A stretch of 64,000 nucleotides of DNA from Podarcis muralis (taxonomy: Eukaryota). This document shows, one piece after another, positions 32,932 to 57,367 of the stretch; position 1 is the first letter of the stretch, and every line of letters starts with the position of its first letter. Location: contig NC_135655.1 in the NCBI RefSeq assembly GCF_964188315.1, forward strand, positions 32,054,001-32,118,000. Reading direction: 5' to 3'. The notes under the pieces were generated by a model. It saw nothing but the letters and a program-made list of their open reading frames with translations, was not told the DNA's origin and ran no database searches. The position numbers and the translations under genes are program-made.

Positions 32932-32953
32932 CTACATAAAGTCTACTTCTAAT
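32932..32953 (-). CDS. MIA2: MIA2/cTAGE5 exon 8 (22-nt micro-exon)
   Basis: ctcttcttttgcag|IRSRLYV-G|gtaagt; needed for phase. Confidence 0.92.
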
Positions 32954-34032: not shown

Positions 34033-34765
34033 TACTGTGGTAATCAGTCACTGCCTGTGAAATAGTACAGGAAGACTATTGTCTTAGATCTAAAAGCTTT
34101 TTAAAAATCAATCTAGATTGAATGGATGTGGAACTTCAGAACCCAATAATGTAGTCAAAAAATAAAGGTATTCCTAATTTAATAGATTCAAATGTTGTTT
34201 CATCATCTTGCTGATGAAAAATACACACAAAATCTCATGCAAATTAAAGTTTCCATAATGTTTCTTCAAGCTACAAGGAAACATCAGAGCAATAAACTAA
34301 TATCTTTAAAAAGATGGGAGTCAGGGAGAGGCCAAATGGACAAAAATAAAGAATACTAGTTCAAGGAGAAAATTAGATAGTTACATCATCAGGGACAGCA
34401 GTTTGCACTACTGAGTATAATTTAGTAATTCTTCAAAATTTATTCTGAAACTGTAACCTATATAGTCTTGAATATTTCAAAGAAAGCCAATTTATTAAAA
34501 CTGAAATACTGCAAATATAAACTATTAAAATAAATGCAACTGAACATGGAGATGGATTTTGTTTAATTTGCTTTTCCAACACCAAGTTGAAATATGAAGT
34601 TGCCAAAATACAGACAAGTATTTAATTCTACAGCTAAAATCCAAAGCCCCATCACAGGAGAAGTCTGGAAGAATGTTACATAGGATTCTCAAAATACAAA
34701 TGAATATTTTAAAAGCAATCCAACAAGTTTGATAAAACTCTGTATAACTCATACTGAATACTTAC

Positions 34766-34897
34766 TGACTGATAACTCCTACACATCAGAAGTAAGATAG
34801 TAAAAATGGCAACAACTGCACCACAAATCACCATTTCCCATGGAAAGCCATAAAGATCTGGACCAGGTTTCATATTTTCAGGCAATGCTGCAAGAAC
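34766..34897 (-). CDS. MIA2: MIA2/cTAGE5 exon 7 (shared transmembrane exon)
   Basis: VLAALPENMKPGPDLYGFPWEMVICGAVVAIFTILLLMCRSYQS; phase 0/0; 132 nt. Confidence 0.96.
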
Positions 34898-36456
34898 CTT
34901 AAAACAAAAATGAACAAAACAAGCTTTTCCCCCAACAATTAAGAGCAAGGTGTTAACATAAACTGTGTATATTTGATCAGGCTAATTCAGCGTTATTTCA
35001 AAACACAATTGATAAAACATTTTTGCAAGACAGAAATCAATACAATAGAAAAGTTGAAAGGGGGAAAGAGAAGAATGTCTCATCATAAGCAAACTCCACA
35101 GTTTAGTGCTTCAGTCTTTTATGTTTACTTTTTTAGAACTGATATAGACACTTATCAGAAGCCCTGTATTTAATCTGGAGATTTCATTTATTTAACACTA
35201 TTGTTCAACAGAAGACAAGAGTGATGTTCTTGATAGTATTGTATGCACACTTCTAAATAAGACAGATAGTGTGCTATCCAATGTTTGCTTACTTTGGGTT
35301 GCTTTTTTTAGGAAACCCCAAAAGTTGATGCTCATAAAGGAAGGAAAAATTATTAATAGAACTATGAACACTTGTTAGCAAGAGTTCAGTGCCTCTCTCC
35401 ATATAGGACAAAACTGCTAAACAGCAAATGACAGAAAACAGACTTATAATATAAGGCAGTGTCAAAGATTTGGTTGACTAGATGAAATCAATATATGAAA
35501 CAAAGACCTTGCTTCCGCACACTGCTTCTTGGTTCCATCTCACTGTCCTTCTAGAATTGCCAAATCACAATGTTGTAGTGACAGCAGGAGCTACAACTTG
35601 CAGAGCTCCCTTTACATAAAATTCTTAAAAGGAACAGTAGCCCTGTCAGACTCTATAGACTAGGAATAGAGAACCTGTGGCCCTCCAGTTTTCATGGACT
35701 CCCAACTTTATCATCCTTGACCATTGACCATGCTAGCCTGATCAACATCCGGAGGGCCCCAGGTTCCTCATCCCTGATCTAGATTCTAAGGTATTTATAT
35801 AGCCAGTGACTTTTTGGAACACAGTACCTATCCCTTCAAATCTCCATCATTTTTCTAATCCGTCCTATTTTCCATCCCATGTGAATTTTTCTTTGACTCC
35901 ATTTCTTCATGTCTCAATAATCAGGTTTCATCAGATTCCTGCTTTTAAGGCTACTGCCTAGTGTCACACTTTCCCTTTAGATACCCCACCTTTTGGCCAA
36001 TCCTCTTAGTACTCAACTTACAGGCCATTCTGACATTATGCATTGTGATTTCTTCACAGCCTCCTTCTGCTTTTTTGTTATTTAGCTCACCCGCCACGTA
36101 TACACTTTTTTCTCAGTCTATTAACTGCACTCTACCCTTAAATTTCCAGAAGAATTAGACTGTTATAGCAAAAACAACAAAGTATGGCATAAACTTTCAC
36201 ATCTCATGAAGTGCACTATGGCCCATGAAAGGTTATGCCCAGTAAAGGAAAAGGGCAGAAGTGTCACAAGACTCTTTATCGTAACTCTATCACTCAGCCA
36301 CCTTATTTCTGGGATCCTTGAATCTTAGCTTTACTATCGCCACATCTACAGCTGCCCTGCAAAACTGTGCACCTGCATTTTAAACCCAACCTAACAGGTA
36401 ATTTCCCCCACTCTCATTTTGATCCCTCAAACACTGGACTATTCATGAACATTTTC

Positions 36457-36636
36457 TGTGGAACGCCCTCCCACCAGATGTCAAAGAGAACTACCAGACT
36501 TTTAGAAGACATCTGAAGGCAGCCCTGTTTAGGAAAGCTTTTAATGTTTGATGTATCACAGTATTTTAATATTCTTTTGGAAGCCGCCCAGAGTGGCTGG
36601 GGAAACCCAGCCAGATGGGTGGGGTATAAATAATAA

Positions 36637-36677
<41 letters not shown>
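36457..36677 (+). mobile_element. L2 LINE 3' end with (TTA)n tail
   Basis: WNALPPDVK..FRRHLKAALFR coding remnant, gccgcccagagtggctgggg 3' UTR, microsatellite tail. Confidence 0.75.
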
Positions 36678-36680
<3 letters not shown>

Positions 36681-38299
36681 GCCTCACACCAGCTTGACTA
36701 ATCTGTATCAGAAACTTCACCACCACATACATAATGCAGAGCAGATCTTTCCATGCTATTCTTCCATCTTCAACACAAGATGAGGTTTTTAAAACCAAAC
36801 TGGGCTCTTGAGCAATCCTTGGTTCAGAATTGGCTGTTCTTGTATTGGCATGGTAGCCTATTCATTTCTCCCAGATGAGAAGCAATTTATCGGTTTCCCT
36901 TCTCAACTTTTTATTTCACAGCCTAAACCAGTAAAAGCATAGATGTTCAAAACTATGACTTGCCACATTAACACTCTGAGAAAATGTAGCGATGATTTAC
37001 ACAACCATTTTTCATATGAATATATTCCTCCTCCTCCACCCCGCCCCATGATTTTGGTGTGGCATCCAGTCTTGTGAATGTTCCCTAAAGTTCCTTGAAC
37101 TCATCATGTCCTGGAAAACTTTTGAAAAACAGACTGAGTTAAGACACAAGGAGTTTATTTATCTTCATTGCCTTTCTTCCATCATGTAGCTCCCAAGCAG
37201 TCATGCATCCAGTTGGCATCAAGGCTTTTGAAGAAACATGCACAAGACTGAACAAAACATCAAAATATAAAAGGATAAAATACATACAGAGAGAGAAAAG
37301 AACTTGTGGTGAATTTATAAAGTGAAAAACCATGGTTGTCTGAATGACTGTTACGTACACAACATACAAACCCAGTTTTACCAATATATCAAATCAGTTT
37401 GTTATTACTACAAGTAATACTAAGCATTCTTTTGTGCACAAGTGAGTTACAATCCTTATCTCAGGTATGGCAAAGATATGGCCTTCCAGATGTTGCTGGT
37501 CTACAACTTGGGCAATTACTGAACACAACAGCTGGGCTGATGATAGCTGGATTCCAACAACATCTGAAGGGCCACAGTTTCCCCATCCCTGCCTCAATTA
37601 TTTCATTCTGACAACAAACTTACCGTATGAGATAGGTTAGTGCACTGTCTAACATCACTCTGTTCTATGGTCAAGTGAAACCCAGGTCTTGAACTTGGGC
37701 CTCACCATCTCTCAGACACAACACTATGAACTGATCCACACATGCAAGTCTCATCACACAATAGCTGGCATGAATTGCTTCTACCAAAAAACATAGTATT
37801 TGAGGCTGGTTTGATTCAAGGTACCTGATTTATAAAGGTTGCTACATAGAGGCAAATCAAAGACTGAGAAATATGCACATGTGAATTCAACCTATAGTAT
37901 TCTTACAGAAGCAAACAGGATACAAGAGAGAGGCACAGACTACATTAGAGAGCCACCTTGAGTTTTATAGCAGACACCTCTTTCCTTCTTCCAGACAGAG
38001 ACCCGCCTATCCTTTTAAGAAACAGGTGACAGATAAAATACAGCTTTGGAACTAAACTGAAGCAATGAGAAAGCTCCACCTGAAGGTCAGCCTCTCACAG
38101 CTCTTAACAGCACAGGAACTTATCAGAAAAAAAGGTGGCAACCTACTTGGCTTAAGTCAATGGTTGCATTCCTACCACCATCTACCCACGGTGCACAGCC
38201 ACCTGTGAAACATTATGCCAGCCTGGAGGCATTTTGTCATTACAGGGCTTCATCTGAACCTGGACTTTGTCCTAGAAAGGGCTTTTAATAACCAGGAGC

Positions 38300-39010
38300 A
38301 CTTGAAGCAACACGGCCGTGCCTCTGAGCATGTGCAGGGCGCAGTCCCCCCCGCCTCTTGAGTACCGCAGCCTAGACGGGCGTGACAGTGAGATGGGCGC
38401 AACGGGGGGGGGGAGTAGGCTTTGGGCCCCTCTCTCGTCACAAGGCAAGCAAAGGCGGCATCCCAGCCGGGGGCAACGCAGAGCTGCAGAGCCCCGGCAA
38501 AGGCCGACGACTCCACGCCCCCCCCCCCGGCGCCCTGCCCTTCCCCGCACTCACGCTCTCCAAGGCCAGCCCGCAGTAGCGCCGAGCGCCGTCCCGCCAA
38601 CCCAGCCCGAGGCCTCCGGCCACGGCCTCCACGGCGTCCTCCGGGCTGCCCCCCGCAACGGCGGCGTCGCTGGCAGCAGCCATCTTTGCTGCAGCAACTG
38701 CGGCTCGGCTCAGGGGGGCCGAGCGGCAACCGGCAGCACCGCCCACACCGCCTCTTCCTGTCCTGGGCGCCCGCCCGGCCAACGGGACGCACCACCGGCA
38801 GCCTCGGAGGGGGGAGCCGGGAGAAACCATGGCCGGAGGGGAGGGAGAGTCGGGCGCCGCAAAAGGAGGACACCGCCGTCGCGAAAGGGTTTTCTTTAAA
38901 AAAGGGGGGGGAGAGGGGGGAAGGAGGAGAGACGGCAGCGCTGCCGGGGAAGGAGAGGCTGTTTCGGTGTTGGGGCAGGAGGCCGCATAGGCATTTCAGT
39001 CGCCCCCACT
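38300..39010 (-). promoter_or_regulatory. CpG island / promoter of the cTAGE5 isoform
   Basis: Very GC- and CpG-rich segment around the alternative first exon in otherwise AT-rich DNA. Confidence 0.85.
38555..38683 (-). CDS. CTAGE5: cTAGE5 alternative first coding exon
   Basis: gcaaagATGG context; MAAASDAAVAGGSPEDAVEAVAGGLGLGWRDGARRYCGLALES|gtgagt, phase 0 onto exon 7; RYCGLALE resembles human PYLGLLLE. Confidence 0.85.
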
Positions 39011-39509
39011 GTACGGCAGTAGGAAGCACCCACTCCCCTGTATTTTTCTGCATGTTCGCAAAGGGCAAAATAAATGATCCAGCCCCGAGGAGGCTACAAA
39101 CCAACTCCAAGCAGCGACCTGAATGACACAGAGCAAGCAATCCCTATGCAGTCATCTTCCGTGTCTGCTCATGTTGCTCTTGTAAAGGGCGGTGGTGCAA
39201 GTTAGTTAATTTGGTGAGACAGAAAAATGCCAAAGAAGACAGTTGCATTTTTCTCTCCGGCCAAAGTCAAATCAGTCTCTTGGCTTTTAAACCGGTGCAA
39301 GTTATTGCAGAGTATACTGCAACATATGCAAAGGGCACTGGAGAGCTTTCAACAATATGCGATAGTTGAGGGGGTTAAGGGCTTGCAACAGGGTCCTTGG
39401 ACGAGATGAGGCATGCTACAAGCATATCCCTAATTTAATCTGTGGAAGACTGAAGGATATGGACTATTAGTATAAACTAATTGCAGCCCTAAACAGGTAA
39501 GGAGTAAGA

Positions 39510-39930
39510 ACACAAGAAGAGCCTGCTGGATCAGATCATTGGCCACCTAGGTCCGGCTTCCTGTTCTCACAAGGGCCCGCTAAATGCCTGTGGGAAATCA
39601 GGAGCAGATTTCTGCCTCCATCTGCGAATGAAGAACACAACCTTTGGCTAATTAAACAATCTATGGCCTTTTAAACTGGGGGGGGGGAGGTATTGTTTTT
39701 GTTAGGGTGTTCTGTATGTTTATGTTTTTATATTGTAAACAGCCCTGGGATCCTAGAGTGAAGGGTAGTATAGAAATTTAATAAATAATGGTAGCCATTG
39801 ATAGCCCTCTCCTCCATGAATTTGCCTAATCCTCTCTTAAAGCCATCAAGTTGGTGGCCATCACTGCCTCCTTGGGGAGCAAGTTCCATAGTCTGACTAT
39901 GCTCTGCATAGTTTTACCTGTCTTAAATCT
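39510..39930 (-). mobile_element. Degenerate CR1 3' region with an embedded L2-like tail
   Basis: gcctgctggatcag..., ctaatcctctcttaaagccatc...gagcaagttccatag motifs typical of CR1 3' ends. Confidence 0.5.
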
Positions 39931-42256
39931 TCCAACAAACTCAGTGCTTCTAAGCATATACAGTACTGTACAGAATTGTGCTACATGTCTTAGGTCTCAT
40001 GGGGTAAAAATCTTTACAAGCAGGGACCAAACATGTAGCTGCTCCCTATGGGATAAGATATGGGGTGGAATAATAAGCTCCCCAATAAAACATTCTGGCC
40101 CTGGAGTAAAGAACACTGATATTTTTAAGTAGAGTCATGTAGGGAACTAGTTTGTGCTGAAACGTATCTTCTTTCAATAGTACACACTTACCGGTATTTT
40201 TACAAAGTCAATATAACTAGTTTGAAACTTGTATCTCTGCTTCTCAGACTACTGATAAATTATAAATCATTGCCTTATTTAAATGCAGATTGAGCAATCA
40301 TGAATTAGCAGCAGACAAGCAGAACCACGTTATGATACAGGTTTATGACAGTGCATGCAACCAGTGTAACAAGTCCCTGCTTTAAGTCTTGTGTCCCAGT
40401 AGGAAATTATATTCAAGATCTTTTTACTTCACCAACTGCTCCATTCTAAACACATTGAGGCCACAGTCCAACATCACACTGAATTCAGTGGCGTAATGAC
40501 ATATGTCTTGAGTAAATTGTTATACTGGGCAGTAAGAATTTGACACTATGCTCATGTGTTGAGCAGATGAAGCGCAAAGCATTCAGCATTGAGCAAGTTG
40601 ACCCTTGTTCTTTTTCTCCATTACTGAGGCAGCCTTCGGCTCTGCTGCTGTGTGGTGCTAAAGAAAAAACTATTTGCTACACAGGAGTATTGTACAAAGA
40701 GGGTGTGCCCCACCCCCACCCCGGAAAAGCTAGAAAGTGGGGGACAGCTGCTATCAGGCAAGCTCTTTCCTTTGTGGTTTCATGTTTCAAAAACACAGCT
40801 GAGAGTGTGGCAAACAAACAGATTCCCTTGTCCATTTAGCAAAAATGGTACTGCCACTGTATTTGTATTGCACAAGCCTTTGCACCACAACAGCTATGGG
40901 TGTGGGGAGGAGAACAGGATTGAACTGCCTTTGGGGTTATTATAATTAAGGAATCCATCTCCAAGTATTGTGTTTAAAATAGGGTTTAGTCTTTGGGGCC
41001 TTCTTTCATAAGAATATAAGTGACTATGATGCTCAATCTTACATAAATGAAAATAAATTTTGGTTGACTACTACTTTTGAGAAAAATATTTTCTTGTTTT
41101 CCTAGTAAGATGATAGGGACCTATATTCAGAGGAGCTTCTAACACTGTAATACAGAAGGAAAACAATGCCCAAGCAACTTGTGCTGCTTGTTCTCTGCAT
41201 ATGTTTCTATGTGCCCATAGCCTAGTTTTCACATCTTCCCGCCTTTTGTGCAATGTCTAAAGGCGGGAAGGGGAACCTGCAGCCCTCCAGATGAGGCTGA
41301 CTCCAGCTCTCATGTGCCCCAGGTAGCATGGCCAATGGTCAGGAATTATGGAAGTTATGGGAGCAACATCTGGAGAGCCACATGTTCCTCATCCTTGATC
41401 TTGAAGCCATTCTGAAAGTAGGTCACCCCACAAGGGCTGAAGCTACAGACCCTTAATACAGATTACCCTTTTTTGTAAACTTGAGGGGAAATTATATTTA
41501 TGGGAACTTTAAGCAGTATTAGCATAAAGATGACAATTAACTCCAATAACAATTATAGCATTGTGTTTCAATCTGGGAGCATTTTAAGTAACACTGTATT
41601 CAAGCATGTGCTTTTTCTCTTCAAACAGATAAGAATGCACAGTTTGTTGTTAAGAATCCTAGAATCCTTGGGATAATATTCCTTGTTTTGTAGTACTTGC
41701 AGTTCTTAGCAGAAACACCGAAGCAGGCGAAAACTGCAAAGATTACAGGGGAAATAAATTAAGCTAATAGCGTGTGGGTGGGGGCCAAGGAAGAAAAGGA
41801 AAATATCCTACTCTGGAAAATTATATTTATGTCTAGGAGTATGAAACAGGAGACATTTTGATTAACTCTAATAACAATTTCTTCCGTAGATTCTTACATT
41901 AAATTGGTATAGGCTATTTGCACCTCAGAGTATAAACAGCTGGCTCTTTACTTCAATGTGAAAATTAGCTTGATACCTGGGTGTCATAACCTGGGACAAC
42001 CGTGAATGTCATGACCTAGGAACTATTCCGAAAACATTAGGAATAAGTTAAGAAGCTCAGCTGCCAACTCTCACAAGTCATAGTATTCAAAATGTCAAAA
42101 GACAAAACTACAAAGCAAAAAAGAAATAAAAAGGCAGCAGTAAAAGATCTACCAGACTGGAGTGTCTATGTGGCACTAAAAAGTCTGGCACGCTAAAGAT
42201 ACAACATTCCCCACCTTTCACTATCGTTAAAAGTTTAACTACCTTTAAAAACTTAC

Positions 42257-42277
42257 CTCTTCCTCTGCTCTTTCCAT
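42257..42277 (-). CDS. Candidate additional first coding exon (MERAEEE) of a cTAGE5-type isoform
   Basis: ATG GAA AGA GCA GAG GAA GAG|gtaagt, strong phase-0 donor; in-frame TAA directly before the ATG. Confidence 0.45.
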
Positions 42278-42974
42278 TTACAAACCAAGTATAGTAATCA
42301 CATAAAAGTTACGTTTAAAAATCTGTAAGAATAATTAAATTAGCTCTAGTTTCCTAGTTGTTTATCCAGATAACAAGAGCTCCCAGTAGCTTATGTTTCC
42401 AAATGGGAAAGAGATCCTGCTTTGACATGTATGCGTTTAAGGAAGGGGTGCAAAAGGGAGGTTAATGACAAGCAACTTTCTTCCAGTATAGTATTACAGT
42501 AGTCAGGTCCTTGTGAAATATCAGATTAGTCGCAGCAAGTATTTAAAAGGTATTGCTAAACAGATGCTTAGGTAACACTTTTTCTTTTCTTTTTTTACAA
42601 GTACGGTATAAGACTCAGCTGAAAATATTACCTTATCAGACTCACAAACGACAAGACCTGAAAGCTGGACTTTAAAGGAAATACAATACATATATGCTAC
42701 CTGTATGGCAGCGCTGGTTTCTTATTAATTTCTATTTTCTCATGTAATTGTCGTATACTTGTATTTAATACTAAGGCAACTTCAATTAACTAAATATGGA
42801 TAAATTTGCAAGATGCAGCATACATAAAACACAAGTTGAATTGAACTTGGTGGGTCTTATGTCCAAGTAAGCATGTTTCAGTTCAGCCTGTCAAGTCATT
42901 CTTCAGAACATACACTTTTAATCTCTTACGGTTAAATTTTAAGGAACCCCGGATAAGAGTTATTTATTCCATTA

Positions 42975-43353
42975 GGTAAAGGTAAAGGACCTCTGGACGG
43001 TTAAGTCCAGTCAAAGGCGACTATGGGGTTGCAGCGCTCATCTCGCTTTCAGGCCGAGGGAGCTGGCATTTGTCCACAGGCAGTTTTCCGGGTCATGTGG
43101 CCAGCATGACTAAACCGATTCTGGCAACGGAGGACCATGATAAGTTCCAGAGCGCACAGAAATGCTGTTTAACTTCCCGCCACAGCGGTGCCTATTTATC
43201 TACTTGCAGTGGTGTGCTTTCAAACTGCTAGGTTGGCAGGAGCTGGGATAGAGCAACGGAAGCTCACCCCATTGTGGGGATTCAGACCACCAATCTTCCA
43301 ATTAGCAAACCCAAGAGGCTCCATGGTTTAGACCACAGCGCCACCTGTGCCCC
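42975..43353 (-). mobile_element. Sauria SINE, full length, older
   Basis: 14-bp TSD tatttattccatta (42961-42974, 43354-43367). Confidence 0.9.
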
Positions 43354-43483
43354 TATTTATTCCATTAATGTATGATGAAGCTGCTGCAGCTAGAAAGATT
43401 CTGAAATTTTAGAGTCCTCTTATTTCTGTCAGGCAGTTAAAGCTTGTGCATTTTCACCAACTCTGTCTGAATCACCACATTTT

Positions 43484-43484
43484 A

Positions 43485-43524
<40 letters not shown>

Positions 43525-43718
43525 TTTATTTATATCCCGCCTCCCCAGCCGAAGCTGGGCTCAGGGCGGCTAACAGCAATCAAAATAGTCCGACATTCTA
43601 AAAACATTCATTATAAAATTAATTAAATCAAATTAAAATCAAATTAATGGCAACCATCAAGCAAAATTCTGTGCAGAAAGAATGCCGATTGCCAGAGGAG
43701 GGGGTCAGGCTGCGCCCT
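43484..43718 (-). mobile_element. L2-type LINE 3' end with (TTA)n tail
   Basis: (AAT)n followed by tttatatcccgcctccccagccgaagctgggctcagggcggct. Confidence 0.65.
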
Positions 43719-43895
43719 GCCCATTCTATTTCTATTTTCTATTTGCATTTCTATTCTATTTTCTATTTCTATTTGCATAAATTTCTATCATATCAAAATG
43801 ACTGAGGATAGCTACAATATAGTCTTCTTTCATTTGACCTATACACTAATAGCTCTGTGATACAGGTGAGGCTGAGGGATACCAACTTGTGCAAG

Positions 43896-44666
43896 CAGAG
43901 CCATCTTTCCCATAGGGCTTAGTGGCTCGTTGTGCCAGGGCGCAGCCTCTCAGGGGCGACCCAGTGAGTGAGGGAGCTGCGCGGCTTTGCCAGTGGCCTC
44001 CCCTTTCCCTGCATGCTGCCAGCTGCGCCACACCATCCATCTTTCCTTCCTACCCTCATCGGCCCGCCCCCCTCTGTGGGCGGCCGCATTGGCGCTGCTG
44101 CTTGTGCTGCTCCCACAAGCGCGCGGCGGTGGTGCGGGCGGTGGTGGATGAGAAGCCACTCCCCGACTCTGAGGCAGTGGCCGAGGACAGGCCGCTGCCT
44201 CCTCTGCCTCCTCTCCCTCAGCCGCAGGAATCCCCTCAGCCACCACCCACCGAGCAGCTGTCATTGTCGTCGTCTGAGGGAGCGGTGGTGGTGGGAGTGG
44301 CTCCCAAGGGGCCTCCTCCGTGTCACCGGTGCCCACCACTCCACCACCACTCCCCGGGGCACAGGCAGCAGCGTGGCAACCGCCTCCTGTTCCTTGGGCC
44401 ACTGGGCAGCAGCTAGAGTGCCAGCAGCGGGCTTTCGTCAGGCAGTGGAGGAGGAGATGCCCTGGAGCCTCAGAAGCGAGCGTGGGGTTCTGGCGGTCTG
44501 GCCAGCCACACCGCGTCCACCACATCAGCAGTGTTTTCTGAAGGTGGTGGCTCCCAGAGCTATGAGGTGGTCCGCGAGTTGGGCCCCAAGTTCTAAATTC
44601 TGGAAAAGGGAGGGGCACTAGAGGGATTTTTGCACAATGGTGCCGGATATGCTTAAGACAGCCCTG
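43896..44666. mobile_element. GC-rich non-autonomous hAT element
   Basis: TIRs cagagccatctt / aagacagccctg; perfect 8-bp TSD tgtgcaag (43888-43895, 44667-44674). Confidence 0.8.
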
Positions 44667-45859
44667 TGTGCAAGGGCACACTGATTAGCTTCAGAGTTGA
44701 GCACAGATTTCAGCCAGACCTCTCCCATCAAAACTCATCGCTCTTGCCTTTTACAAAAGAGTGATAACTCTGTGGGCTCTCAAGAAGCTTTTAGGCTTCA
44801 CACAAGATAATTAATTCCATTCTACCTAGAAAATAAAGTGATGAGCCAAGGATGACATGTCATCTGCTGCTTCCTCATGTCATCTACTGCAAGGGGTTCC
44901 TAGTGTTTTAGCCAGGAGACCTACACAAAGAATCTGCTCGTGTTACAAGGCTCAGAACAAATTTAAAATGTGATGCAAAAAGCACATACTCCTACATATG
45001 TATGCAAATATGAAATGCCTCCCTAGGAGGCACTGTGCACTCTTGTATGCATTGATATGAGAATTCAGGAGGCTCAATACAACACTATTGCCGACCTTAA
45101 AAGCACATTTTCCACTCAAAGAATTAAGGGCACTCTAGTTCTTTACAATTAGATCTTTATCCCTTCTACCCACTGCAGGCCAAATTTAACAGGGAGATAA
45201 GGAACGGTTCTTAGTGATATCACAGGAGTCAGTAGAGATGGAAGGACCTGTCCATTTCAGTTCTCTCAGTTTCTAATTTTTTCAGTATTAAATTTAGTCC
45301 TACACATTTCTGCAGTGATTTGCAATTCTTTAAAAACAAACCTCATAAAAACACATCAGCATTTCAGTGCAAATCTCTCTTAATACACATATTATTGTAT
45401 GTAGCTTTGACTAATAATATTCATTTCTGCAAGCATTTTCTCCTAATATAATGTATTTTGTTTATAATGCATTCAGTTTTAAGGACACCTTTACCCCAAT
45501 ATATGCATTTTTGCACACATTACTTGCCCAGACACCTGCATCACAAAATCCAGATAAGTGCGAATTTGAAAGGATGGCTGCATTTCAGTTCTCATATTGT
45601 TTCAGAAAGTGTGAATTTGATAGACCCTCCTTTAAATGCAAGCTGAATCAAATTTCTCCCCCATCTGAACTTGCAAACATTCATAACTTCCGTCCATTCC
45701 TACTTTAGATCAGGTTCAGTGCTATTTGAAAACTACAGGGAAGTGACGGGAGTGAACTAGCAAATGCAAACTTAGGAGGAACGTCAAATAGAATGTTTTC
45801 AAAGCTGTAACTAGTGCATTTTTATGATTATTGTAGAAATACAAAGTAAATACACGTAC

Positions 45860-45954
45860 CTTTTTACTGGTAGATGCCATCACTGAAAATACAGGTGTTA
45901 TAATGGCACAGAAGTCATTCAAATGCAGGATTATCTGAAATAGCCATTCTCTTT
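45860..45954 (-). CDS. MIA2: MIA2 (TALI) exon 6, putative intramembrane helix
   Basis: Long pyrimidine tract ...gaaacag|AA; EREWLFQIILHLNDFCAIITPVFSVMASTSKK|gtacgt; 95 nt, phase 1 to 0. Confidence 0.85.
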
Positions 45955-46058
45955 CTGTTTCATGAAAAAGTAGAGGAAGAGAGAATGAGTATTACAATAT
46001 ATCTTCTTTACAGAATACTATATGTAATTACAGTTTTTAGATTAATCATATTCCTTAC

Positions 46059-46286
46059 CATTACTGATAGTATAGTTATGAGTCACTAGATTGTTCTCTG
46101 ATAATTTTCTTTTTGAATTTGGCTGATGTTGACTATTTTTGGCTGAAGTATGTATTCTCTTCTCTGTATTTATTGGAGGCACATTATTTGCTTCTGTATG
46201 TTGGCCACTGTTAGGTTCTTTATCCAAATTCAAGTGATGTTTTTCTTTAGGATGATCGTCAGATAATTTTCCATTATTGGTCATAC
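46059..46286 (-). CDS. MIA2: MIA2 (TALI) exon 5
   Basis: ttatttgtag|GT ATG ACC; GMTNNGKLSDD...HNYTISN; G|gtaagg; 228 nt, phase 1/1. Confidence 0.8.
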
Positions 46287-47272
46287 CTACAAATAATTGT
46301 AAAAGTGGTATCATGTTTATTTCCACCTGATTATCCATTTTTTACCTGCATGTCAATACCCAGGATCCCTATTCATATCTCATTGTCAATTCAACCATTA
46401 AAGTTCTCTTGTACCACAGTCTCCCAACTTACAATTAGAAATATTAAAATCAGGGAATACACCACCACATCAAAGCATGGCTAATGAAATGAGTCAAGGA
46501 AGCTCTTGGAGGCTAGAAAGGTTCCTACATAAACCTTAAGTATTGTATGAATAAGGAGGGGGGAAAGGAAACACAAATATTGGCAAAAGAAATGCAAGCA
46601 GAAAATAAGGAAGAAAAAAAGCATTGGATCGCATCCCTGAAATTATTAAGACTGACAATATAAAATTACTGCATTTAAATGTGTTAGAAGCAGGAAACTG
46701 GCTAGGGTGGAGATGCATACAAGCATGACTGATGGAATTTGAACCTGATCACTTCTGGAAGCCTTTTTATATCAATTTATTAATGTGTCAAGGAATATGT
46801 TATATTTTCCATTGTTGTACTGAAGATGAAAATTTAAATATGACTTTTCCTTATATAATAATCATATTTAGTAAACTGCAATGGACTAAAATCCAGATAT
46901 GTAAGCAACAACCAAAAAGCCTTTTGTTAATAGCCCTACCAAACATGTATCTTCTGAGATACTATTGTTGCTGTGGGGCTGTTGCATCCTTCCAGCACCC
47001 AGCTATTTATTCTGCTGATAGAAAATGAATGATTCTTTTTTTTTGTATTTTCGGTTCTATATTATATTTCCTGACAAAGCACAATACAACTTGGTATTAT
47101 CCTGCTGTTGTGTAAGCTTATAATGGGCATCAGCTTCTATAGTTCATTTTATACTGGGGAAAAAATCACATCATCCCATCGGTCAGACATTTTGCTTTTT
47201 TTAAATAAAAAAGCAAAGTGCGATATTGTTCTTGCTTTGTTAGCTTTTATTATCAAAACAGTGGTCTGGTAC

Positions 47273-50200
47273 CTGATTCTGCCTTTTGAATTTCACATTT
47301 GTTTCTGATGTCCAGCACAAGACTGTGCAGTTCTGGAAGTAAATTCACTTTATCCTTCAAACATTTTTCATGTCCACTGTTTAATTTATTTTCATGTTCC
47401 ACCAAAGTAGTCACTTCTTTCATTTCCCTGAGAATATCTTCACATGGAAAAGTGGTGATATCACGGCGAAGTTTCTCAAACTCTTGCTCTAGTAGCTGCA
47501 GTTCATGCCTTTCACACATATTTGCTTCAAGTGTCCTTTTAGACTCCTCAACAAACTTGAAATAAAGTTCCTGTAATCCACTGAAGGAAGTGGCTTCTTT
47601 CAGGTCCAACTCTGTATCAGCTGTTAATTGACCATTTTGAACTATTGTCTCCTGATTTGCAGATCTGTCATACTTTTGGTTGTAATTTTTTGAGTCTGCA
47701 GCGACAGATTTTTCCTGGATGTTGCTGTATCTTTCCTCTGGGCCCGGAGATCCCTCATCCATAATTTTAAAATTATCTAAATACCTGATAGCTTTTGTGC
47801 TCTGAACTTCACCTTTGTCTTGTTCAAAGTCACTTCTCACTACATCAGCCTCCTGCCTCTTTGTCTTAATCTGTGTTCCAATAATATTTCTACCATCTTC
47901 ATATTTTTTAGAGTCTTCATCGTCCTTATTTTTAAATGGCTCTCCAAGAAGCCGTGATAGTTTACCAGAAATGTTACTCCCGACACCTCCTTTCTCTGTC
48001 TTGTCACTTGTGCAATCTATATTCTTGCATCTTAGTTTTTTCTCACTATCTTTACCCGTTTTGCCTTTTTCTTGACTATCTCTTGCATGCCCAGAATAAG
48101 CTACTTTCTCTGCATGGTTTAGATTTTTAGGAAAAGGAGAATTTAAGTCATGTGCAAATGTTTCATCATGATGATCTTTAGCTAAATGGTGTGTGTCCAT
48201 GCCATCTTTAGCATGTGGAGGGATAGGGTCCATATAATCATCCACAGGCTGAAGATGATGTGATAAATGTTTGCTAGGATTAATATTATTATCTGGATTA
48301 GATGTATCACGTCGCACTTCTAAGTGCTCGATTGGATTTTCACTGGCAGGACTTGTTCCAACTACAGTATATTGTTTCTGAGGTAAACTATTAAAGTCAG
48401 TTGTCGCTAAACCGTCTTTAGGTTTTATGTCAGTTATCTCTGAAGTTGTGCATGCTATCTGTTTCTGATACTCGGGTTTAGTTTCTTCAGTATTTGGAAT
48501 GATATCTATTTTTTTATGCTGAGCTGAGATTCTAAGCTTCTTCACTTCTAAATCTGCAGTTAAATGTTGCTTTCTATCATGTCCCTTCTGACTTATACAC
48601 TTTTTGTCAGGTACTAAGCTCATAATATTGGTACTCTGACAGTCAAGGTAGGAAGATGATACTTGTTCACCTTTTAACTCTTCTTTATCTTCATTCTGAT
48701 GTGTCAGACTTGCACACATTTGAGGTGAGTGAATACTTTTCTTGGGAAAAGTGCCCGAGGAGCTAGGATAAGGAAATACACTTTGCCCTTGCTGATCTAT
48801 TAATGAAGCATCACTAACTTGAGCACTATCTAAATGTTCTTCTATTGCTTTTGAGTTTTGTTCCTCTTCAACACCTTTTTCTCCTATCTGCACTTGTGGG
48901 CCCTGAAAGCCTTTCTTCTGCACACCGTAGGCGACAGAATCATAATTCGGTATGCGGCTGCTGTCCCCGGAAATCTCCTTTTCACTTTGAAACACTTCCT
49001 CAGACAGTGGAGATGGTCCTTGATTACTTGATGTATTTTGCTCATTGTGTCCTTGTTTGCCTTCACTAAGTTCTGAGATATGCTGTGAAAAATGCATTTG
49101 TTCTTTTGCACTTTCTTGAGAAAACAAATTCTTGTCTACCTTAGTAATTACACTTTGGTTCATCTCATCTTCAGCACTGGGGTTGATATGAAAATAATCT
49201 TGGATGGCACGAGAGGGGACACTTTCTATATTTTTAACATCAGGAAGTTTCTTTTCATCATGAGAATCTATAACATTATCTGCCCTTATATTGTTGCTTA
49301 TACGTTTTTTTGAATGTAAATGTGGCACTGGATCTGAAACTTGTATTCCTTTCATAACATCTGTATAACCTATGACAGGAGTATGACTACTCCCATTCAA
49401 AACTTTTGAGACTAAACAATTATTTTTATTAACATTGTATTTGCTAGATTTGGAATCTTTGTTAATAGCCTTATACTGTTGTTGTGGTGGTCTTCTTACA
49501 CTGTATGTTAATTCTGGTGCTTCATGTTGTTCTGTTAAAAATGGATTCTGATTTTTTGTATTAAATTCTCCGCTCCCTTGGATAACTGTCCTATCTTCAT
49601 CAAGAGGTATCTTATCTTCGCCTGGAATGTTCTTTGATTTGGAAAAACTATCTGAATGTTCATTCAACTCCTCAGAAAATAGTGCTTGTTCAACATTATC
49701 TGGACTGATTGCTTTCCCATCATGTGGCTCATCTTCTCCTAGGATAGATTTTTCATAGGAATATGTTTCACTAATATAATCCTTTCGCTCTGCCAAATCA
49801 GCTAGCTTTTGTAGCTCTAAAGAAGACTGTTTGGCCTCTAAGTTATGGACATTGTTTTTATCTTCTATATTGGAATGGCCCTGTGTGTCCAAAGGTCTTC
49901 CATACAATTTTTTTCCTGTACATTGACCATTGACCTGGTGTTCTAACTCTATAGATTTTACTGACAGAGGATGTGGTGTATTATCTTTCGCTAGTTGTTC
50001 ACCCTGTCTTTTTCCTCTACTTTCTTCACTACATTTTACTGCTAAAGAAGACAGCAAAACATTTCCCTGGGTAGTATCAGCATCTCTGTTTTCTGGCACC
50101 TTTTCAGTAATATTCTTATTTTCTAGTAATTCTTCTTTGCCTATTTGTAGTACTTCCTCACTCTTTTTAAATTGGGTGCTTTCCTCACTAGACTTTAGAT

Positions 50201-51701
50201 TATTGTGTGCATGCTGAGCATTATTGGTTCCTTCAGATATAAAACTCTTATAATTCAGTACACTTGTAAAATAACTAACAGAAAATAAAGATTTCTGGTT
50301 TTTAGGACCCTCATGATTTTCTTCCTTTGCAGTACCTTGACCTATACTATATGATAACTCATCTACAACTGATTCCTGTGGACTCTCAACAGTTACATAC
50401 TCATGCCCTGGTTGATTATCTGATGTAACCCTATTATAATCAATCAAACTGTTATACATACTTTCATACCAACCTGACTGGTCATTTGTTCTTTCTGACT
50501 CCTTTGTTACAGCTTTAATTTTACTGTTTTCCATAACTTGATTGTCTGGTATTGAATCCTGTTCTGCATAGGGAGACTTAAGTCCTTTATCACCAAGCAA
50601 AGGTGATGGACTTGCTGCATCCTTTACGTCTGCATGCTCATCTGCTAACTGCGCATCAGAATCTGTTTTTCTAACATGTATGCCTGGGGCTTCTTGGACA
50701 TATTTTTCTTTCACTTGTTCTTCGTAAAGAGTAGGTTCAGCTGCTTGCTTTGGGGTTTCTTGAACAATTTTTTCTTCGTCTCGTTCTTCATAGGGCATCA
50801 GTCTGCCTGTTTGCTTTCTCAAGCCATCGTCCGTTAAGCTTGATTCTTCACTTGGATGCTGTTCTTCATCTTGATCTGCTTCTCCTCCACCTGCAAGCTT
50901 TTCTTTGTCTGCATTTTCTTCAGCGTAACGAAAAGGCAAAATATTACTGAATTCCAGATCAAACCAGCTTGATTCAGTTTGTTCGGAATTGCTATGTTCT
51001 TTTATTCCTTCTGACGCGGTAGAACTGCCATGGTGGCCGGCATTGCCAGCAATGGTGGAGCTGTCGTGGATTTCTGGATCATTTTCTTTGTACAGCAGAT
51101 CAAGTTCTGATTTGTCACTTCCAAGATGCATCAAATCTGCGAAAGTACTTTTAAACCAGCTGGAGCCTTGTGGTGCTGTTTCACCCTCTTCGTTTAATTT
51201 TTTAAAGCCACTATCATCAGTTATTGCTATTTTCCTGCGCCTGAATGTAACTTCTTCTGTTTTCTGTGATATTTTTCTGACCGCCTCCTCATTTTCATTA
51301 CTTCCCAAGCCAAGCCAGCCAACAAAACCAGACACAGTCCAGGCCGACTGAGTTGGGACAGCTTGCGGAGTCTGACTAATTTGGTCTTCTTCCGGAGTAG
51401 TCTCATCTTGTCTGGTCTCCCTGTCGCTGAGTTCTGTATCACCATAGCTTGTAGTTTCCAGCGTATGCAGGTCTTTGTATTTACTGTCAGATTCATGACT
51501 GTCAGGAAATTGTTCTTTATATTCATTTGGGTAAGAAATACCTCCAAGTTTCAAGGCTTCATCTTCAGGCATTTCAAATTTGGTGTCTTTTTCTTCTGAG
51601 TACGGAGGTATATATTCATTTTCTTTGTCATAATGATTAAGTATGCTGTCTTCATTTTCAAAAACGTATTCCCCTCCATCAATACAAAGGAAATCAGTTT
51701 C
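47273..51701 (-). CDS. MIA2: MIA2 (TALI) exon 4, long form (4429 nt; luminal acidic linker plus helical region)
   Basis: tatttttag|GAA ACT GAT TTC CTT TGT (ETDFLC); 1476 uninterrupted codons; donor G|gtacca. Internal in-phase donor at 50474/50473. Confidence 0.85.
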
Positions 51702-52371
51702 CTAAAAATAAGCAAGTGTCTGAAGTTAATACGCTACTACCCATTTAATACAACTCTACTATTTGTTAACATTATATCATTATGAATATTTTTTAAAAGC
51801 ATGCAAATGTTCCAACAGGGAAATTATGAAATAATTAAGTTGTTAAATAATTGTGAAATGTACATTCTCTTTAAAATTTAACACAAGGAATATTTAAAAC
51901 AGAGCAACTTTATTAATCATTTTTATGAGACCAAGATGAGTAGTTCATGCATTTGAAAGAGTTCTTTAGAACATGTTTTACACACATGCAAATGTATATT
52001 CTTATGCATATTTGTTGGAAGCGGCAGTGATAGATGTTAAGTTGTGAGTGAACAAATCAGACGACACAGCGATTCTTCAAACAGCTCTTGTTTGTTCACA
52101 GGCCCAGAACAGAACTGGACTGAAGAGTTCAGCCAACCTGCTTATATAGAGCTCAACTACAAAGCAACAGTAACAACTTTCTATCCAATCACTGAACGTC
52201 ACTTTCAATTCCTTATTTGCATATGTGGACCTGAGTGAAAACTATCTACAGTACCCCCCTGCTGGCCCAGGGTGAGTAAATAACAATAGACACTTAAAAG
52301 ACTCTGGGGACACAGGCCTTTGCGTAGAGATGGGCAAGTCTCTCAATTTTGGTTTCTCCCAAGTTTCTGTT

Positions 52372-52488
52372 CTTGGAGTTTTTAAAGCAGAGGTTAGATG
52401 GGCATCTGTCATGGAAGCTTTAGTTGAGATGCATTGTAGGAGGTTGGGCTAGATGACCCTCAGGGTCTCTTCCAACTCTAAGATTCTA
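52372..52488 (+). mobile_element. CR1 3' terminal fragment
   Basis: ggagttttttaaagcagaggttagatgg...ccaactctaagattcta tail. Confidence 0.7.
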
Positions 52489-52564
52489 TAACAAGTTTAA
52501 TACATACATTCATATATACATTTCCACAACCAAATATCTCCATTTTGATATTACTTTAATTTAC

Positions 52565-52651
52565 CTTAGTTGGCAGTTCTACTTCTTTTGTAATAAAAGT
52601 TTCTTCAATCCAGACTGCATCCACTGGGAAATATCCAAATTCTGCACCTTT
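52565..52651 (-). CDS. MIA2: MIA2 exon 3 (SH3-like MIA domain)
   Basis: KGAEFGYFPVDAVWIEETFITKEVELPTK; 87 nt. Confidence 0.95.
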
Positions 52652-54158
52652 CTATAAAATTAAACATGTAGCTTTTTATTATAAAAGAAATGGGGTTTTG
52701 TACTTAAAATTGACATACAACAAATACAATTGTGAGAAGAATCTCTGCACTTATTTCAATTAAGTCTGGATAAAAAAAACAAACTTATCTCAGAAAATTT
52801 TCTCTCCCGCTTCATAAAAATACACAAAGTAATAGTACTTTTAATGTTATTATTTTGCACATTATTAAAAGTACTCTTGTACATTACAATAACCAGCCAT
52901 TAATTGCTGTTTGGGCCCTACTGGGTACAATAATGGCCTTATCTTGTTCCACAATGTCTCTAGCAAATATTCCCAGTTAATTTATTAGGAAACAGGGATA
53001 TGACCTAGTTGCTTGGCTAATAAAAAAGCACAGGAATGTTCTTGTTTACATAGACCGATGTAATGTAATAGTGAGTGCCTACACTTAATGTGAAATTACA
53101 TCTCTGGAAGGAAATGTTCAAATAAACGATTATGGTTTATGCCAAGAGGATTTAAAAGGATTACACTGCTTGCCACAATATTAACATCACTTTGAAATCT
53201 TACCTAGGGCACAATTTATTAACAGTAGGAAACAAATAAGTAACATATTGCCCCCTGCCCCACCAAGGGAGAGTTATAAACCACACACACAGTTATATAT
53301 TGCATTACTGTGTTGTATTATATTAATGCCAAAAGATTATGAATACCTGTAACATTTGTTAATGGCACTATGTGATGAAGCACTCACTCCGGTGGCAAAG
53401 TGGACCACAGATTTGAGTGACTTATTTTTCTCACATGCTGATCCTGCTAGTTCATGAGAACTACCACTGATTTTGTAAAGACAACATGGCCTGATTCAGA
53501 GTGCTGACCACCCATAAACTGTGAGGTGTGGAAACACTGTACAGTTTTTATTCATGGAAACAAATACTTTGTCTAAATTCTAGGAACCTTCCTTACCCAG
53601 AAACTTCCTTTGCTGCAAAAGGGGGGTGGGGCTTATGGCTCGCATAGATCTTGATAAGTTTGCTCTCAGGGTTACAGCAGCCAAATCTACAGAGCAATCT
53701 TTTTCATGCACTGCAGGGCAGCAGGGGGTGTTCCCTTTGGATCGACACCATTTCAGAATAAAATTATTGAAGAAAAGTATAATTTTCCCTGCAGCTAAAT
53801 GCATGCTGAATTTTCTACCTGTGAAAGTGGTATCATAACTTACCTCTGAAACGTTTGTGAAACTTACCTGGCTAGCATTTTTAAATGTCTCAACATATTC
53901 ATGGAAAAGTGTCTAGCCCACTGAAAAACCACTTATGAATAACCACTGCTTATTTTCTATAAAAAGGTGCCGGTACTCACCATGAAGTTGTTACAGTGAG
54001 TGCCACACTTTTAACCAGTGCTTTTCTTCTGGACAAAAATGGTGCTGTTATTGTGTACTCTTGAGTACCCCAGGAAAAAAACACTGAATAACCAATCTGT
54101 TGATATAAGTGAATTCTGATTGCTCATAAGAGAAATAGTTGCCTTTTGAAATACTTAC

Positions 54159-54292
54159 ACTTCCTGCCCACAAGTCCTCCCTTTTCCTGGAGAGTTTGGA
54201 GTATACGATTATCTCTTCGCCAGTTTTGAAGTTCAAATAGCGGCAGTCAGGTCCTATGTAGTCTTTAATGGCTAGCACTCTGCTCATGAAAG
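54159..54292 (-). CDS. MIA2: MIA2 exon 2 (SH3-like MIA domain)
   Basis: TFMSRVLAIKDYIGPDCRYLNFKTGEEIIVYSKLSRKREDLWAGS|gtaagt; 134 nt. Confidence 0.96.
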
Positions 54293-54430
54293 CTGCATGT
54301 ATGTAAAAAACAGAGGAAACTTAAGCAAAGTTAATCAAATGTAGTCTGGATTTGATCTTATACATGTGGCTTCAGACAGTCATAGAATCATAGAATTGTA
54401 GAGTTGGGACCACGGGGATCATGTACTGTA

Positions 54431-54870
54431 CAGTGATACCTTGTTTTACAACCATAATCCATTCCGGAGGTCCAGTTGTAAACCAAAACAGGTTGTAACC
54501 CAAGGTGCGCTTTCGCCAATAGGGCCTCCCCCCCAAATAAAGGGTTGTAATCCCCAAAAAAGGGACACACACGTCAGGGTTTGGCGTGGTTGTAATCCAA
54601 AACGGTTGTAGAGTGGTACTTCGGGTTACATACGCTTCAGGTTACAGACTCCACTAACCCAGAAATATTACCTCGGGTTAAGAACTTTGCTTCAGGATGA
54701 GAACAGAAATCGTGCTCCAGCGGTGCAGCTGCAGCAGGAGGACCCATTAGCTAAAGTGGTGCTTCAGGTTAAGAACAGTTTCGTGTTAAGAACGGACCTC
54801 TGGAACGAATTAAGTACTTAACCTGAGGTACCACTGTAATCCAAAATGATTGCAAACCAAGGTACCACTG
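54431..54870. mobile_element. Tc1/mariner-type MITE (outer)
   Basis: TA|cagtgataccttgttttacaac ... ttgcaaaccaaggtaccactg|TA. Confidence 0.85.
54611..54836. mobile_element. Tc1/mariner-type MITE (inner, nested)
   Basis: TA|gagtggtacttcgggtta ... taacctgaggtaccactg|TA inside the outer MITE. Confidence 0.85.
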
Positions 54871-55237
54871 TAGTTCAATCCCTTGCAATGCAGGTATCTT
54901 TCACCCAAAGTGTGCCTTGAACACGACCTTGAAATTAAGAGCCTCATGATCTACCGACGGACCTATCCCAGCTGTCCTAAAGTTTAAAATCTACTCTCCT
55001 CCCGAATAATATGTTGCCACATGCAAAAATCACAGTACATGTCCGAAACACACTGGCATTGCATTTACATTATTTGTGTACATTAGATATCCTCTTGTCC
55101 TAGAAGATGGGGGGAATTTCACCTCACTTTAAATGAAATGTTTTACCACTTACTACAGAAACAACAAAATCCTGTACACATTTTTTCAGAAATGGTTAGT
55201 CTCACTATGCAATTCTTAAAATAAACGAACAAACTTA

Positions 55238-55739
55238 GAATCATAGAGTTGGAATAGACCACAAGGGCCATCGAGTCCAACCCCCTGCCAAGCAGGAAAC
55301 GCCATCAGAGCACTCCTGACATATGGTTGTCAAGCCTCTGCTTAAAGACCTCCAAAGAAGGAGACTCCACCACACTCCTTGGCAGCAAATTCCACTGTCG
55401 AACAGCTCTTACTGTCAGGAAGTTCTTCCTAATGTTTAGGTGGAATCTTCTTTCTTGTAGTTTGGATCCATTGCTCCGTGTCCGCTTCTCTGGAGCAGCA
55501 GAAAACAACCTTTCTCCCTCCTCTATATGACATCCTTTTATATATTTGAACATGGCTATCATATCACCCCTTAACCTCCTCTTCTCCAGGCTAAACATGC
55601 CCAGCTCCCTTAGCCGTTCCTAATAAGGCATCGTTTCCAGGCCTTTGACCATTTTGGTTGCCCTCTTCTGGACACGTTCCAGTTTGTCAGTGTCCTTCTT
55701 GAACTGTGGTGCCCAGAACTGGACACAGTACTCCAGGTG
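55238..55739 (-). mobile_element. CR1 LINE 3' fragment, young
   Basis: [23 protein letters not shown]...[29 protein letters not shown]; ctctatgattcta tail; possible 7-bp flanking repeat aaactta. Confidence 0.92.
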
Positions 55740-56152
55740 AAACTTAAATTAATTGTTTGCGCTGAGTAGCGTTTGGTTAGAATTTCCTCTAATGGTATCC
55801 TAAATAAGTTTAATGTTTGTATATGAATACACATTCTTCTTGTCTTTTTTTCTACTACACATGCGTTTCAGCACGCAGTTTTAGTTTTCCAGTTCCACAA
55901 AAACGCACCTAGAGCACACACTATGAATTCTGCGAACTGAATTTTTTCTTCATTTTACGACGAATGCTAAGCGAGAAACACATTATGGAGTAATTAGAAA
56001 TACATTCCAAAATAGATTTTAACAAGACTGCTAAACTAAATTTGGGGGCGCTGGGCAGATTTTTGCAACCAGGCAGAGCATATGCTAAAGACGGTCCTGT
56101 GCATAAATCATGCCCAGGAACACTGTAATAGACAAGTCCTACACATCTGCAC

Positions 56153-56502
56153 GGGACGCGGGAGGCGCTGTGGGTTAAACCACAGAGCCTAGGACTTGCC
56201 GATCAGAAGGTCAGCGGTTCGAATCCCCACGACGGGGTGAGCTCCCGTTGCTCAGTCCCAGCTCCTGCCAACCTAGCAGTTCGAAAGCACGTCAAAGTGC
56301 AAGTAGATAAATAGGTGCCGCTCCGGAGGGAAGGTAAACGGCGTTTCCGTGCGCTGCTCTGGTTCGCCAGAAGTGGCTTAGTCATACTGGCCACATGACC
56401 CGGACGCTGTACCCCGGCTCCCTCGGCCAATAAAGCGAGATGAGCACCGCAACCCCAGAGTTGGTCACGACTGGACCTAATGGTCAGGGGTCCCTTTACC
56501 TT
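56153..56502 (+). mobile_element. Sauria SINE, full length
   Basis: gggacgcgggaggcgctgtgg head, ggttcgaatcc B box, acctttacctt tail; 13-bp TSD tacacatctgcac. Confidence 0.92.
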
Positions 56503-57252
56503 TACACATCTGCACAAACACTCCACCTCACAGTCCTATTGACGAGCATTTCACTAGTATATAACATTAACAGGCAGCACAGTCCTATGCATGTTCTCTC
56601 AGAGACAAGGCCATTGTATTCAATGAGTCTTGCTTCTTGTATATACAACTGCAGCCTTAGCCGCAATCCGAAGCGTTCTTAACTTGGGTTGGGAGTAAGA
56701 CTCATTGAACTCACCCAGTGGCACTTCCTTCTGAGGAAATATACAGGAGATAGTGCTACAAACAGTGCAGTTTTAAGGCAAGGTACAAAAGCAATAAGAT
56801 TTCACAAGGTGCTAAGAAAAATAGAAAGACAACCGAATCAACCCAAATATATGGTATAGATTTAGTAGAACACTAGTAATTTGTATACATAACTAAAATA
56901 GAAATACTGTAAATATTAATCAGGCCCTTTTGGAAAGTAAGAGATTTTGAATAAGCACAGGGACAATTCTGACGAAAACTAGGCCCCTGTTTTGATAACA
57001 AGCTTTTCTACTGAACTTTGCCCTTTTACATATGCTACAACACCATTCCACCAAATGGCTTCCCATAAAGCATTTGTCTGTTGTTGAAAATATACAGGTT
57101 AATCATGCATAAAGCTAATATTTTGCAAACATTTCTTGAAGTATATATTGCATTTTCAAAAAAATTTCTTGCTTTGTTTTGTTTTACAGATTTTGACGAC
57201 ACTTAAATTAGTTTCAAAGAAGCTTACTTAAAGCAAAAGCCCTTATACTTAC

Positions 57253-57367
57253 TTTCGCATTCTGGATCGCCACACTTTTTGTGGCCTGACAACAACTTTG
57301 TGCTCTTGGTGATAGTTAGCAATGAAAAGATCAAAAACAAAATTCTGATTTCCCAAATCGGCAGCAT
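57253..57367 (-). CDS. MIA2: MIA2 exon 1 (signal peptide)
   Basis: MLPIWEIRILFLIFSLLTITKSTKLLSGHKKCGDPECE-A|gtaagt; KKCGDxEC is the MIA-family signature; 115 nt. Confidence 0.93.

Follow-up and report, generated by a model that had tools for sequence, protein, structure and literature searches.

Two same-phase 5′ splice sites in the giant exon 4 of MIA2/TALI and an optional luminal extension in Podarcis muralis and other sauropsids

Does exon 4 of MIA2, the gene encoding TALI, which acts at endoplasmic reticulum exit as a receptor for bulky lipoprotein cargo, specify a luminal arm of one length in Podarcis muralis or of two? The question is raised by a 64,000-nt stretch of the genome (assembly GCF_964188315.1, contig NC_135655.1, positions 32,054,001 to 32,118,000; referred to as the window), on the minus strand of which exon 4 forms a single open frame with a GT donor inside it and another at its end. 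TALI and TANGO1 are receptors through which cells export cargo that does not fit into ordinary COPII vesicles, and how their luminal parts select it is an open question (PMC4862334). The initial annotation, made from the sequence, had read the segment between the two donors as an optional extension; the coordinates, lengths and phases it assigned to the exon were correct and are listed below, a slash marking a splice junction.

47273..51701, minus strand: exon 4 in its long form, 4429 nt or 1476 codons plus 1 nt (acceptor, frame and distal donor read directly; tblastn of Podarcis raffonei MIA2, P0001, residues 113-1588 over 51701..47271)
51702/51701, minus strand: exon 4 acceptor tttttag/G (sequence)
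50474..51701, minus strand: proximal exon 4, common to every TALI isoform, 1228 nt or 409 codons plus 1 nt (P. raffonei isoform X7, 1416 amino acids, ends this part at ...TNDQS/G)
50468..50476, minus strand: internal phase-1 donor CAG/GTTGGT, exon end 50474, intron start 50473 (sequence and RNA contig joint)
47273..50473, minus strand: optional extension, 3201 nt, 1067 codons (open frame, RNA contigs, in-frame indels)
47267..47275, minus strand: distal phase-1 donor CAG/GTACCA, exon end 47273 (sequence and RNA contig joint)
46287..47272, minus strand: intron 4 counted from the distal donor, 986 nt (zero RNA depth)
46059..46286, minus strand: exon 5, (G)MTNNGKLSDDHPKEK..., with the acceptor common to both donors (sequence, RNA contigs, tblastn)

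The internal donor reads gac cag tca g/gt tgg tat (50474/50473) and the distal donor gca gaa tca g/gt acc (47273/47272). Each leaves one base of a Gly codon, i.e. phase 1, and both are compatible with the exon 5 acceptor tttgtag/GT ATG ACC at 46286, giving ...S/G MTNN. The exon thus has what defines an alternative 5′ splice site, namely two canonical same-phase GT donors, one acceptor and an optional part of 3 x 1067 nt. Splicing at 50474 would drop 3201 nt of coding sequence plus intron 4 and yield a TALI of 1416 amino acids, and splicing at 47273 would keep the 1067 codons and yield one of approximately 2483 amino acids with an endoplasmic reticulum (ER)-luminal arm longer by approximately 1000 residues. 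Both predicted lengths, already given in the initial annotation, fit the P. raffonei isoforms of 1416 and 2482 amino acids, exon 4 of the window being longer by a net 3 nt.

Two RNA runs, each from a separate study (run X1 from 2019 and run X2 from 2025), gave spliced contigs with both joints. The long joint 47273>46286 had a depth of 13 in run X1 and 9.8 in run X2, and the short joint 50474>46286 had depths of 6.4 and 26.6, respectively, so that the long form made up around two thirds of the transcripts in run X1 and around one quarter in run X2. The branch depths in run X2 add up to 36.4 versus 35.5 in the contig immediately upstream of the branch point. The extension was spanned by 3252-nt RNA contigs (depth 13 and 9.8), and the depth of intron 4 was 0 in both runs. 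The contigs also carried the exon 3-4 and exon 5-6 joints; since they reach exon 3 and exon 6 sequence, they represent spliced mRNA. Both mRNAs therefore exist, and the junction check proposed with the initial annotation (50474>46286 versus 47273>46286) came out, at the contig level, in favor of the use of both donors and of an optional extension. Two runs available as raw reads, X23 and X24, contained 0 reads on the MIA2 locus, hence gave no test of the joints. Separately, low-depth contigs of run X2 (4.8 and 5.7) depart from exon 4 at 50546 and 50695, both non-GT positions, into sequence outside the window; these loose ends were set aside and may be chimeras, unresolved or structural variants, or something else.

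The coexistence of the two mRNAs could also reflect a fixed stochastic competition of two suboptimal 5′ splice sites, used without regulation and with only one of the isoforms functional. GTTGGT and GTACCA are indeed both off consensus, and the missing tissue identities of the RNA runs leave room for such a mixture. We consider it unlikely, because the long-to-short ratio lies about fivefold apart between the runs (2.0 versus 0.37) and because both the donor and the long frame have persisted since squamates and archosaurs diverged, which would be unexpected if either product were dispensable. The choice of donor may instead be regulated between tissues or states.

A second alternative is that the extension is intron-like noise retained in part of the transcripts, its frame being fortuitous or the relic of a recent exon loss. 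The extension contains 0 in-frame stops, versus 48-141 in the other five frames and a mean of 80 (minimum 57) in 1000 shuffles. For an estimate of selection, the window was compared with the P. raffonei locus L004. Proximal exon 4 showed 3.26% divergence, no indels and a ratio of nonsynonymous to synonymous substitution rates (dN/dS) of 0.43; the whole extension showed 2.85% divergence, indels of 3, 3 and 9 nt (all in frame) and a dN/dS of 0.69; intron 4 showed 4.3% divergence and indels of 1, 33, 8, 1, 1, 1 and 1 nt. The three indels of the 3.2-kb extension are thus all multiples of 3, as opposed to seven mostly out-of-frame indels in the 1-kb intron 4. Within the extension, dN/dS was 0.48 in the first 150 codons, 0.82 in the middle and 0.36 in the last 150 codons. 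From the exclusively in-frame indels and the low dN/dS at the ends it follows that the frame of the extension and its two ends are under selective protection; the middle behaves as a loosely constrained spacer. Polymorphism pointed to similarly loose constraint, the RNA individuals differing from the window by 7 synonymous and 23 nonsynonymous changes (pN/pS, the corresponding ratio within the species, about 0.8). At 49477, an RNA contig of run X2 lacks 3 nt of the window without loss of frame, a length polymorphism in the extension.

The values near 0.8 for dN/dS in the middle and for pN/pS, together with the lack of recognised domains in the extension, are what retained noise would predict. 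This alternative is nevertheless strongly disfavored and the least credible of those considered here: 0 stops in 1067 codons against a shuffle minimum of 57, indels only in frame, ends conserved at a dN/dS of 0.36-0.48, and the frames of 1636-1830 codons, 31-43% identical, that are described below for snake, turtle, crocodilian-like contig and other squamates all contradict it. The earlier proposal that the stop-free stretch reflects selection is borne out by the absence of stops and by the in-frame indels relative to P. raffonei.

A phmmer search with the extension against 1.8 billion representatives yielded 18 proteins; the named ones were all sauropsid MIA2/cTAGE5 or pinin-MIA2 fusion models, and no mammal, amphibian, fish or MIA3 protein was among the 18. 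A wider homologue search gave more than 120 sauropsid clusters among the matches listed, a junction-directed search matched turtles only, and a text search for GWYENIY gave no match. On the genomic level, exon 4 was open in frame over 1732 codons in the snake Candoia, 1806 in the turtle Mauremys, 1830 in a crocodilian-like contig, 1636 and 1661 in two further squamate contigs and about 741 in a bird, the long-frame orthologues (snake, turtle, crocodilian-like contig and other squamates) being 31-43% identical. Eight loci share exactly the same context around the internal donor, CCAGTCAG/GTTGGTAT, namely the window, P. raffonei, two other squamate contigs, Sceloporus, Mauremys (twice) and the crocodilian-like contig. 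The distal donor AG/GTAC is conserved in loci L001-L004, the last being that of P. raffonei. As judged from these genomic frames and donors, the two-donor layout is common to squamates, turtles, crocodilians and birds and is ancestral as far as Sauropsida are concerned. The earlier notion of an internal donor within a longer ancestral exon accordingly stands for Sauropsida, with donor and long frame in squamates, turtle, crocodilian-like contig and birds; its mammalian part, in which human exon 4 would end at the homologous position (...SLS/D) and the short human MIA2 would read on into GWYENIY, is plausible, the turtle read-through being exactly GWYENIY.

In the extension of Mauremys mutica, the donor motif CAG/GTTGGTATGAAAAT occurs twice (L006:13522 and L006:14746), and the flanking coding sequences are about 44-48% identical at the amino acid level. 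The repeat is an internal duplication of about 1.2 kb, which supplies one more potential internal donor. The crocodilian-like open reading frame P0012 shows a weak internal echo of a similar kind.

Several Gnomon models (Sceloporus X1, Candoia X1, Mauremys X1 and Gavialis X3) begin at a Met inside the extension, as expected if the extension mainly served transcripts that start inside exon 4 and encode proteins lacking both signal peptide and SH3 domain. Such a role is very improbable. The genomic frames of Candoia and Mauremys are already open at the start of exon 4, so the truncated starts are modelling choices; the RNA contigs of P. muralis run continuously from exon 3 past the internal donor into the extension; and a luminal arm without a signal peptide would be topologically senseless. 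The idea that models of this kind indicate broken open reading frames was also rejected, being false for Candoia and Mauremys, whose genomic frames are open.

With these alternatives weighed, MIA2 exon 4 is very likely a giant coding exon with two same-phase 5′ splice sites that are both used, making the arm optional. The features of the coding sequence that bear on the possible role of the arm are the following.

50382..50474, minus strand: conserved start of the extension, GWYESMYNSLIDYNRVTSDNQPGHE (alignment of squamates, turtle, crocodile and birds; motif scan; dN/dS 0.48)
starts at 51345, 51162, 50970 and 50475, minus strand: four copies of a Trp motif, SAWTVSGFVGWLGLG, SSWFKSTFADLMHLG, SSWFDLEFSNILPFR and SGWYESMYNSLIDYN (motif scan of the TALI luminal region)
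47277..47588, minus strand: C-terminal module of the extension with four conserved cysteines (alignment A2, AlphaFold model, dN/dS 0.36 in the last 150 codons)

The motif S-x-W-[FTY]-x3-[FY]-x2-[LIM]... occurs at exon 4 residues 119, 180 and 244 in the proximal part, and a fourth copy opens the extension, beginning at S409, the residue immediately before the internal donor. The short isoform thus has three copies and the long one four. We know of no described function for an S-x-W-F-type luminal motif. The extension as a whole is polar (grand average of hydropathy -1.0), no tandem repeats were found in it, and it is probably disordered for the most part. The four-cysteine module is conserved from lizards to crocodilians (alignment A2). 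In the AlphaFold model it is predicted to fold as a three-helix bundle (helices 65-85, 91-110 and 126-168, predicted local distance difference test scores mostly 84-92 in the helices). A look-up of the module in the ESM Atlas returned only generic coiled-coil look-alikes with low recognition.

The additional arm would follow the SH3-like (MOTH) cargo domain and precede the membrane. It would consist, in this order, of the fourth Trp motif, a polar and fast-evolving spacer and the four-cysteine three-helix module, which would lie just before the parts encoded by exons 5 and 6 and adjoin the membrane segments. The long arm may alter the reach of the receptor or its binding of cargo or partners in the ER lumen.

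Several points weigh against this reading and temper it. The joints were obtained from contigs of a k=31 de Bruijn graph, not from raw reads, and the shorter side of each joint is covered by 20-24 unique letters; translation of the extension is predicted from frame and mRNA. Amino acid constraint is weak in the middle of the extension, where the dN/dS of 0.82 is matched by the within-species pN/pS. A Pfam search of the extension returned no family, and a Foldseek comparison of the C-terminal module with Swiss-Prot models brought up nothing beyond generic helical bundles (E > 0.1), none of them a significant fold match. Finally, in the Sceloporus undulatus assembly (L005:17531-18253) the extension is frameshifted about 81 codons past the internal donor, with 1260 codons downstream open; this could be an assembly error or a real young lesion. 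Frequent frameshifts in orthologous extensions, which according to the initial annotation would have spoken against its reading, did not appear. On balance, the alternative 5′ splice site is regarded as real, ancient and regulated-looking, while its regulation and its function are what we infer.

Isoform models of related species suggest that the exon can be cut in further ways. Three isoforms of P. raffonei are annotated at NCBI with 1416 (X7), 2482 (X1) and 2235 amino acids (X5). Isoform X7 joins ...TNDQS/G to MTNN and X1 retains the whole extension; in X5 (P0003), the internal donor at ...DQS/G is joined to EDEPHDG via an acceptor inside the extension. This acceptor, a second candidate acceptor and a conserved intronic element lie in the window as follows.

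49738..49748, minus strand: internal acceptor atctatcctag/GA, exon continuing from 49738 in the frame set by the internal donor (used in P. raffonei X5; intact in the window)
47437..47450, minus strand: candidate internal acceptor ttttccatgtgaag/AT, from which the exon would continue at 47437 (homologous to a Rhineura site; read from the window sequence)
47228..47237, minus strand: intronic element AAGCAAGAAC, about 36-45 nt 3′ of the distal donor (conserved in lacertids, two other squamate contigs and the crocodilian-like contig)

The acceptor at 49738 was not seen in the contigs of runs X1 and X2. In Rhineura, the homologue of the 47437 site leads to inclusion of only the last approximately 60 amino acids, and isoforms of Lepidochelys and Paroedura have a similar tail-only inclusion. 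Three proteins (P0056, P0075 and P0032) carry only the tail of the C-terminal module, some species including only the last approximately 60-90 residues by way of another internal acceptor. The element AAGCAAGAAC may serve in splicing. Short isoforms ending this part at ...QS/ are paired, in squamates, turtles, crocodiles and birds, with read-through isoforms of the type GWY(E/K/T)(S/N)(M/I)Y..., the turtle sequence past the internal donor being GWYENIY.

The assignment of the gene to MIA2/TALI, likewise made in the initial annotation, was confirmed by comparison with P. raffonei. Translated exon 4 is 93-94% identical to the MIA2 isoform X1 of that species (2482 amino acids, named by NCBI) and 89-90% identical to a Zootoca model. 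By tblastn, the P. raffonei protein is colinear with the window over about 25 exons (57367..6581), exons 1-3 matching residues 1-112 of P0001 at 87-97%. An SH3-like (MOTH) domain lies at the N terminus (Pfam SH3_2 on P0001 residues 44-98, E 2e-8). Orthology to MIA2 rather than MIA3 is indicated by the named matches, every one of which was MIA2 or cTAGE5 and none MIA3, and by the colinear cTAGE5-type C-terminal part. Six exons precede an 11-kb intron (exon 6 ends at 45857, the next exon is at 34900), and within this intron, at 44000-44499, sits an island of 68% GC. In medaka and human, six TALI-specific exons are followed by a cTAGE5-specific first exon/promoter and then by shared exons (PMC12702677, PMC4862334), a layout with which the six exons upstream of the intron with its GC island would be compatible. 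The island is probably a cTAGE5-type internal promoter or first exon. No match to PNN was found within the window, the end of which lies 6.6 kb upstream of MIA2 exon 1; pinin-MIA2 fusion models exist for turtle and crane, which suggests that PNN and MIA2 are adjacent in other species.

The lizard protein resembles mammalian TALI in its signal peptide, SH3-like/MOTH domain, acidic luminal region, membrane segments, coiled coils and proline-rich tail, and probably in the six TALI-specific exons with a cTAGE5-type internal start region after them (PMC4862334). It differs in that lizard, and more widely sauropsid, TALI has an extra form with further luminal residues (1067 in the lizard) from the same exon. 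The short lizard isoform of 1416 amino acids is close in size to human TALI, which we take to have 1412. TANGO1 has a luminal coiled coil and TALI is without one (PMC4862334), whereas long lizard TALI would have, according to the structural model, a helical four-cysteine module in the place equivalent to that coiled coil. The long isoform of TANGO1/MIA3 is a paralogous ER-exit-site receptor in which a long luminal arm and a luminal coiled coil separate the SH3-like domain from the membrane (PMC4862334), and in its domain order long lizard TALI is nearer to TANGO1 than mammalian TALI is. However, no MIA3 among the 1.8 billion representatives showed phmmer similarity to the extension.

Short secreted MIA2 or read-through forms, such as the 664-amino-acid SH3 protein of Crocodylus (P0017), also read past the internal donor into GWY(E/K/T)NIY...; these database models end within the extension, whereas the lizard frame reaches the distal donor and rejoins the membrane-anchored part. 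In exitrons and alternative 5′ splice sites of large coding exons, a protein-coding stretch with GT-AG ends, its length divisible by 3, is either spliced out or retained. The lizard exon is similar in that a coding stretch of this kind is kept or removed and in that the donor nucleotides also encode a conserved Gly-Trp. It differs in that the main event combines an alternative donor with a normal acceptor, a true exitron, in which donor and acceptor are both internal, being present only in the P. raffonei X5 model, and in that the optional segment is unusually long (3.2 kb).

One could go further and suppose that the long isoform is the ancestral amniote TALI and its module the counterpart of the luminal coiled coil of TANGO1, that egg-laying amniotes kept the switch for yolk very-low-density lipoprotein (VLDL)/vitellogenin cargo, and that mammals fixed the internal donor while the rest of the exon decayed into intron 4. 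This scenario is rather doubtful at present. No description of an optional luminal arm of TALI was found in the literature searched. The arm is new to that literature; the receptor is known, and the isoforms are already present as automatic RefSeq models, which tempers the interest, as does a function that is so far proposed from sequence.

A conserved, alternatively spliced arm of 400-1400 residues is present in every sauropsid lineage sampled, and no mammalian match was among the search results. The nucleotides of the internal splice site double as conserved codons, GGT-TGG being both Gly-Trp and G/GTTGG, and have been kept as such since the squamate-archosaur split. The locus offers a natural experiment, in which one receptor occurs in two versions that differ by a long spacer and an additional module predicted to fold. 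In the doubtful scenario given above, a regulated switch between a short luminal arm and one longer by approximately 1000-1400 residues would adapt the ER-exit machinery of egg-laying amniotes to very large lipoprotein cargo.

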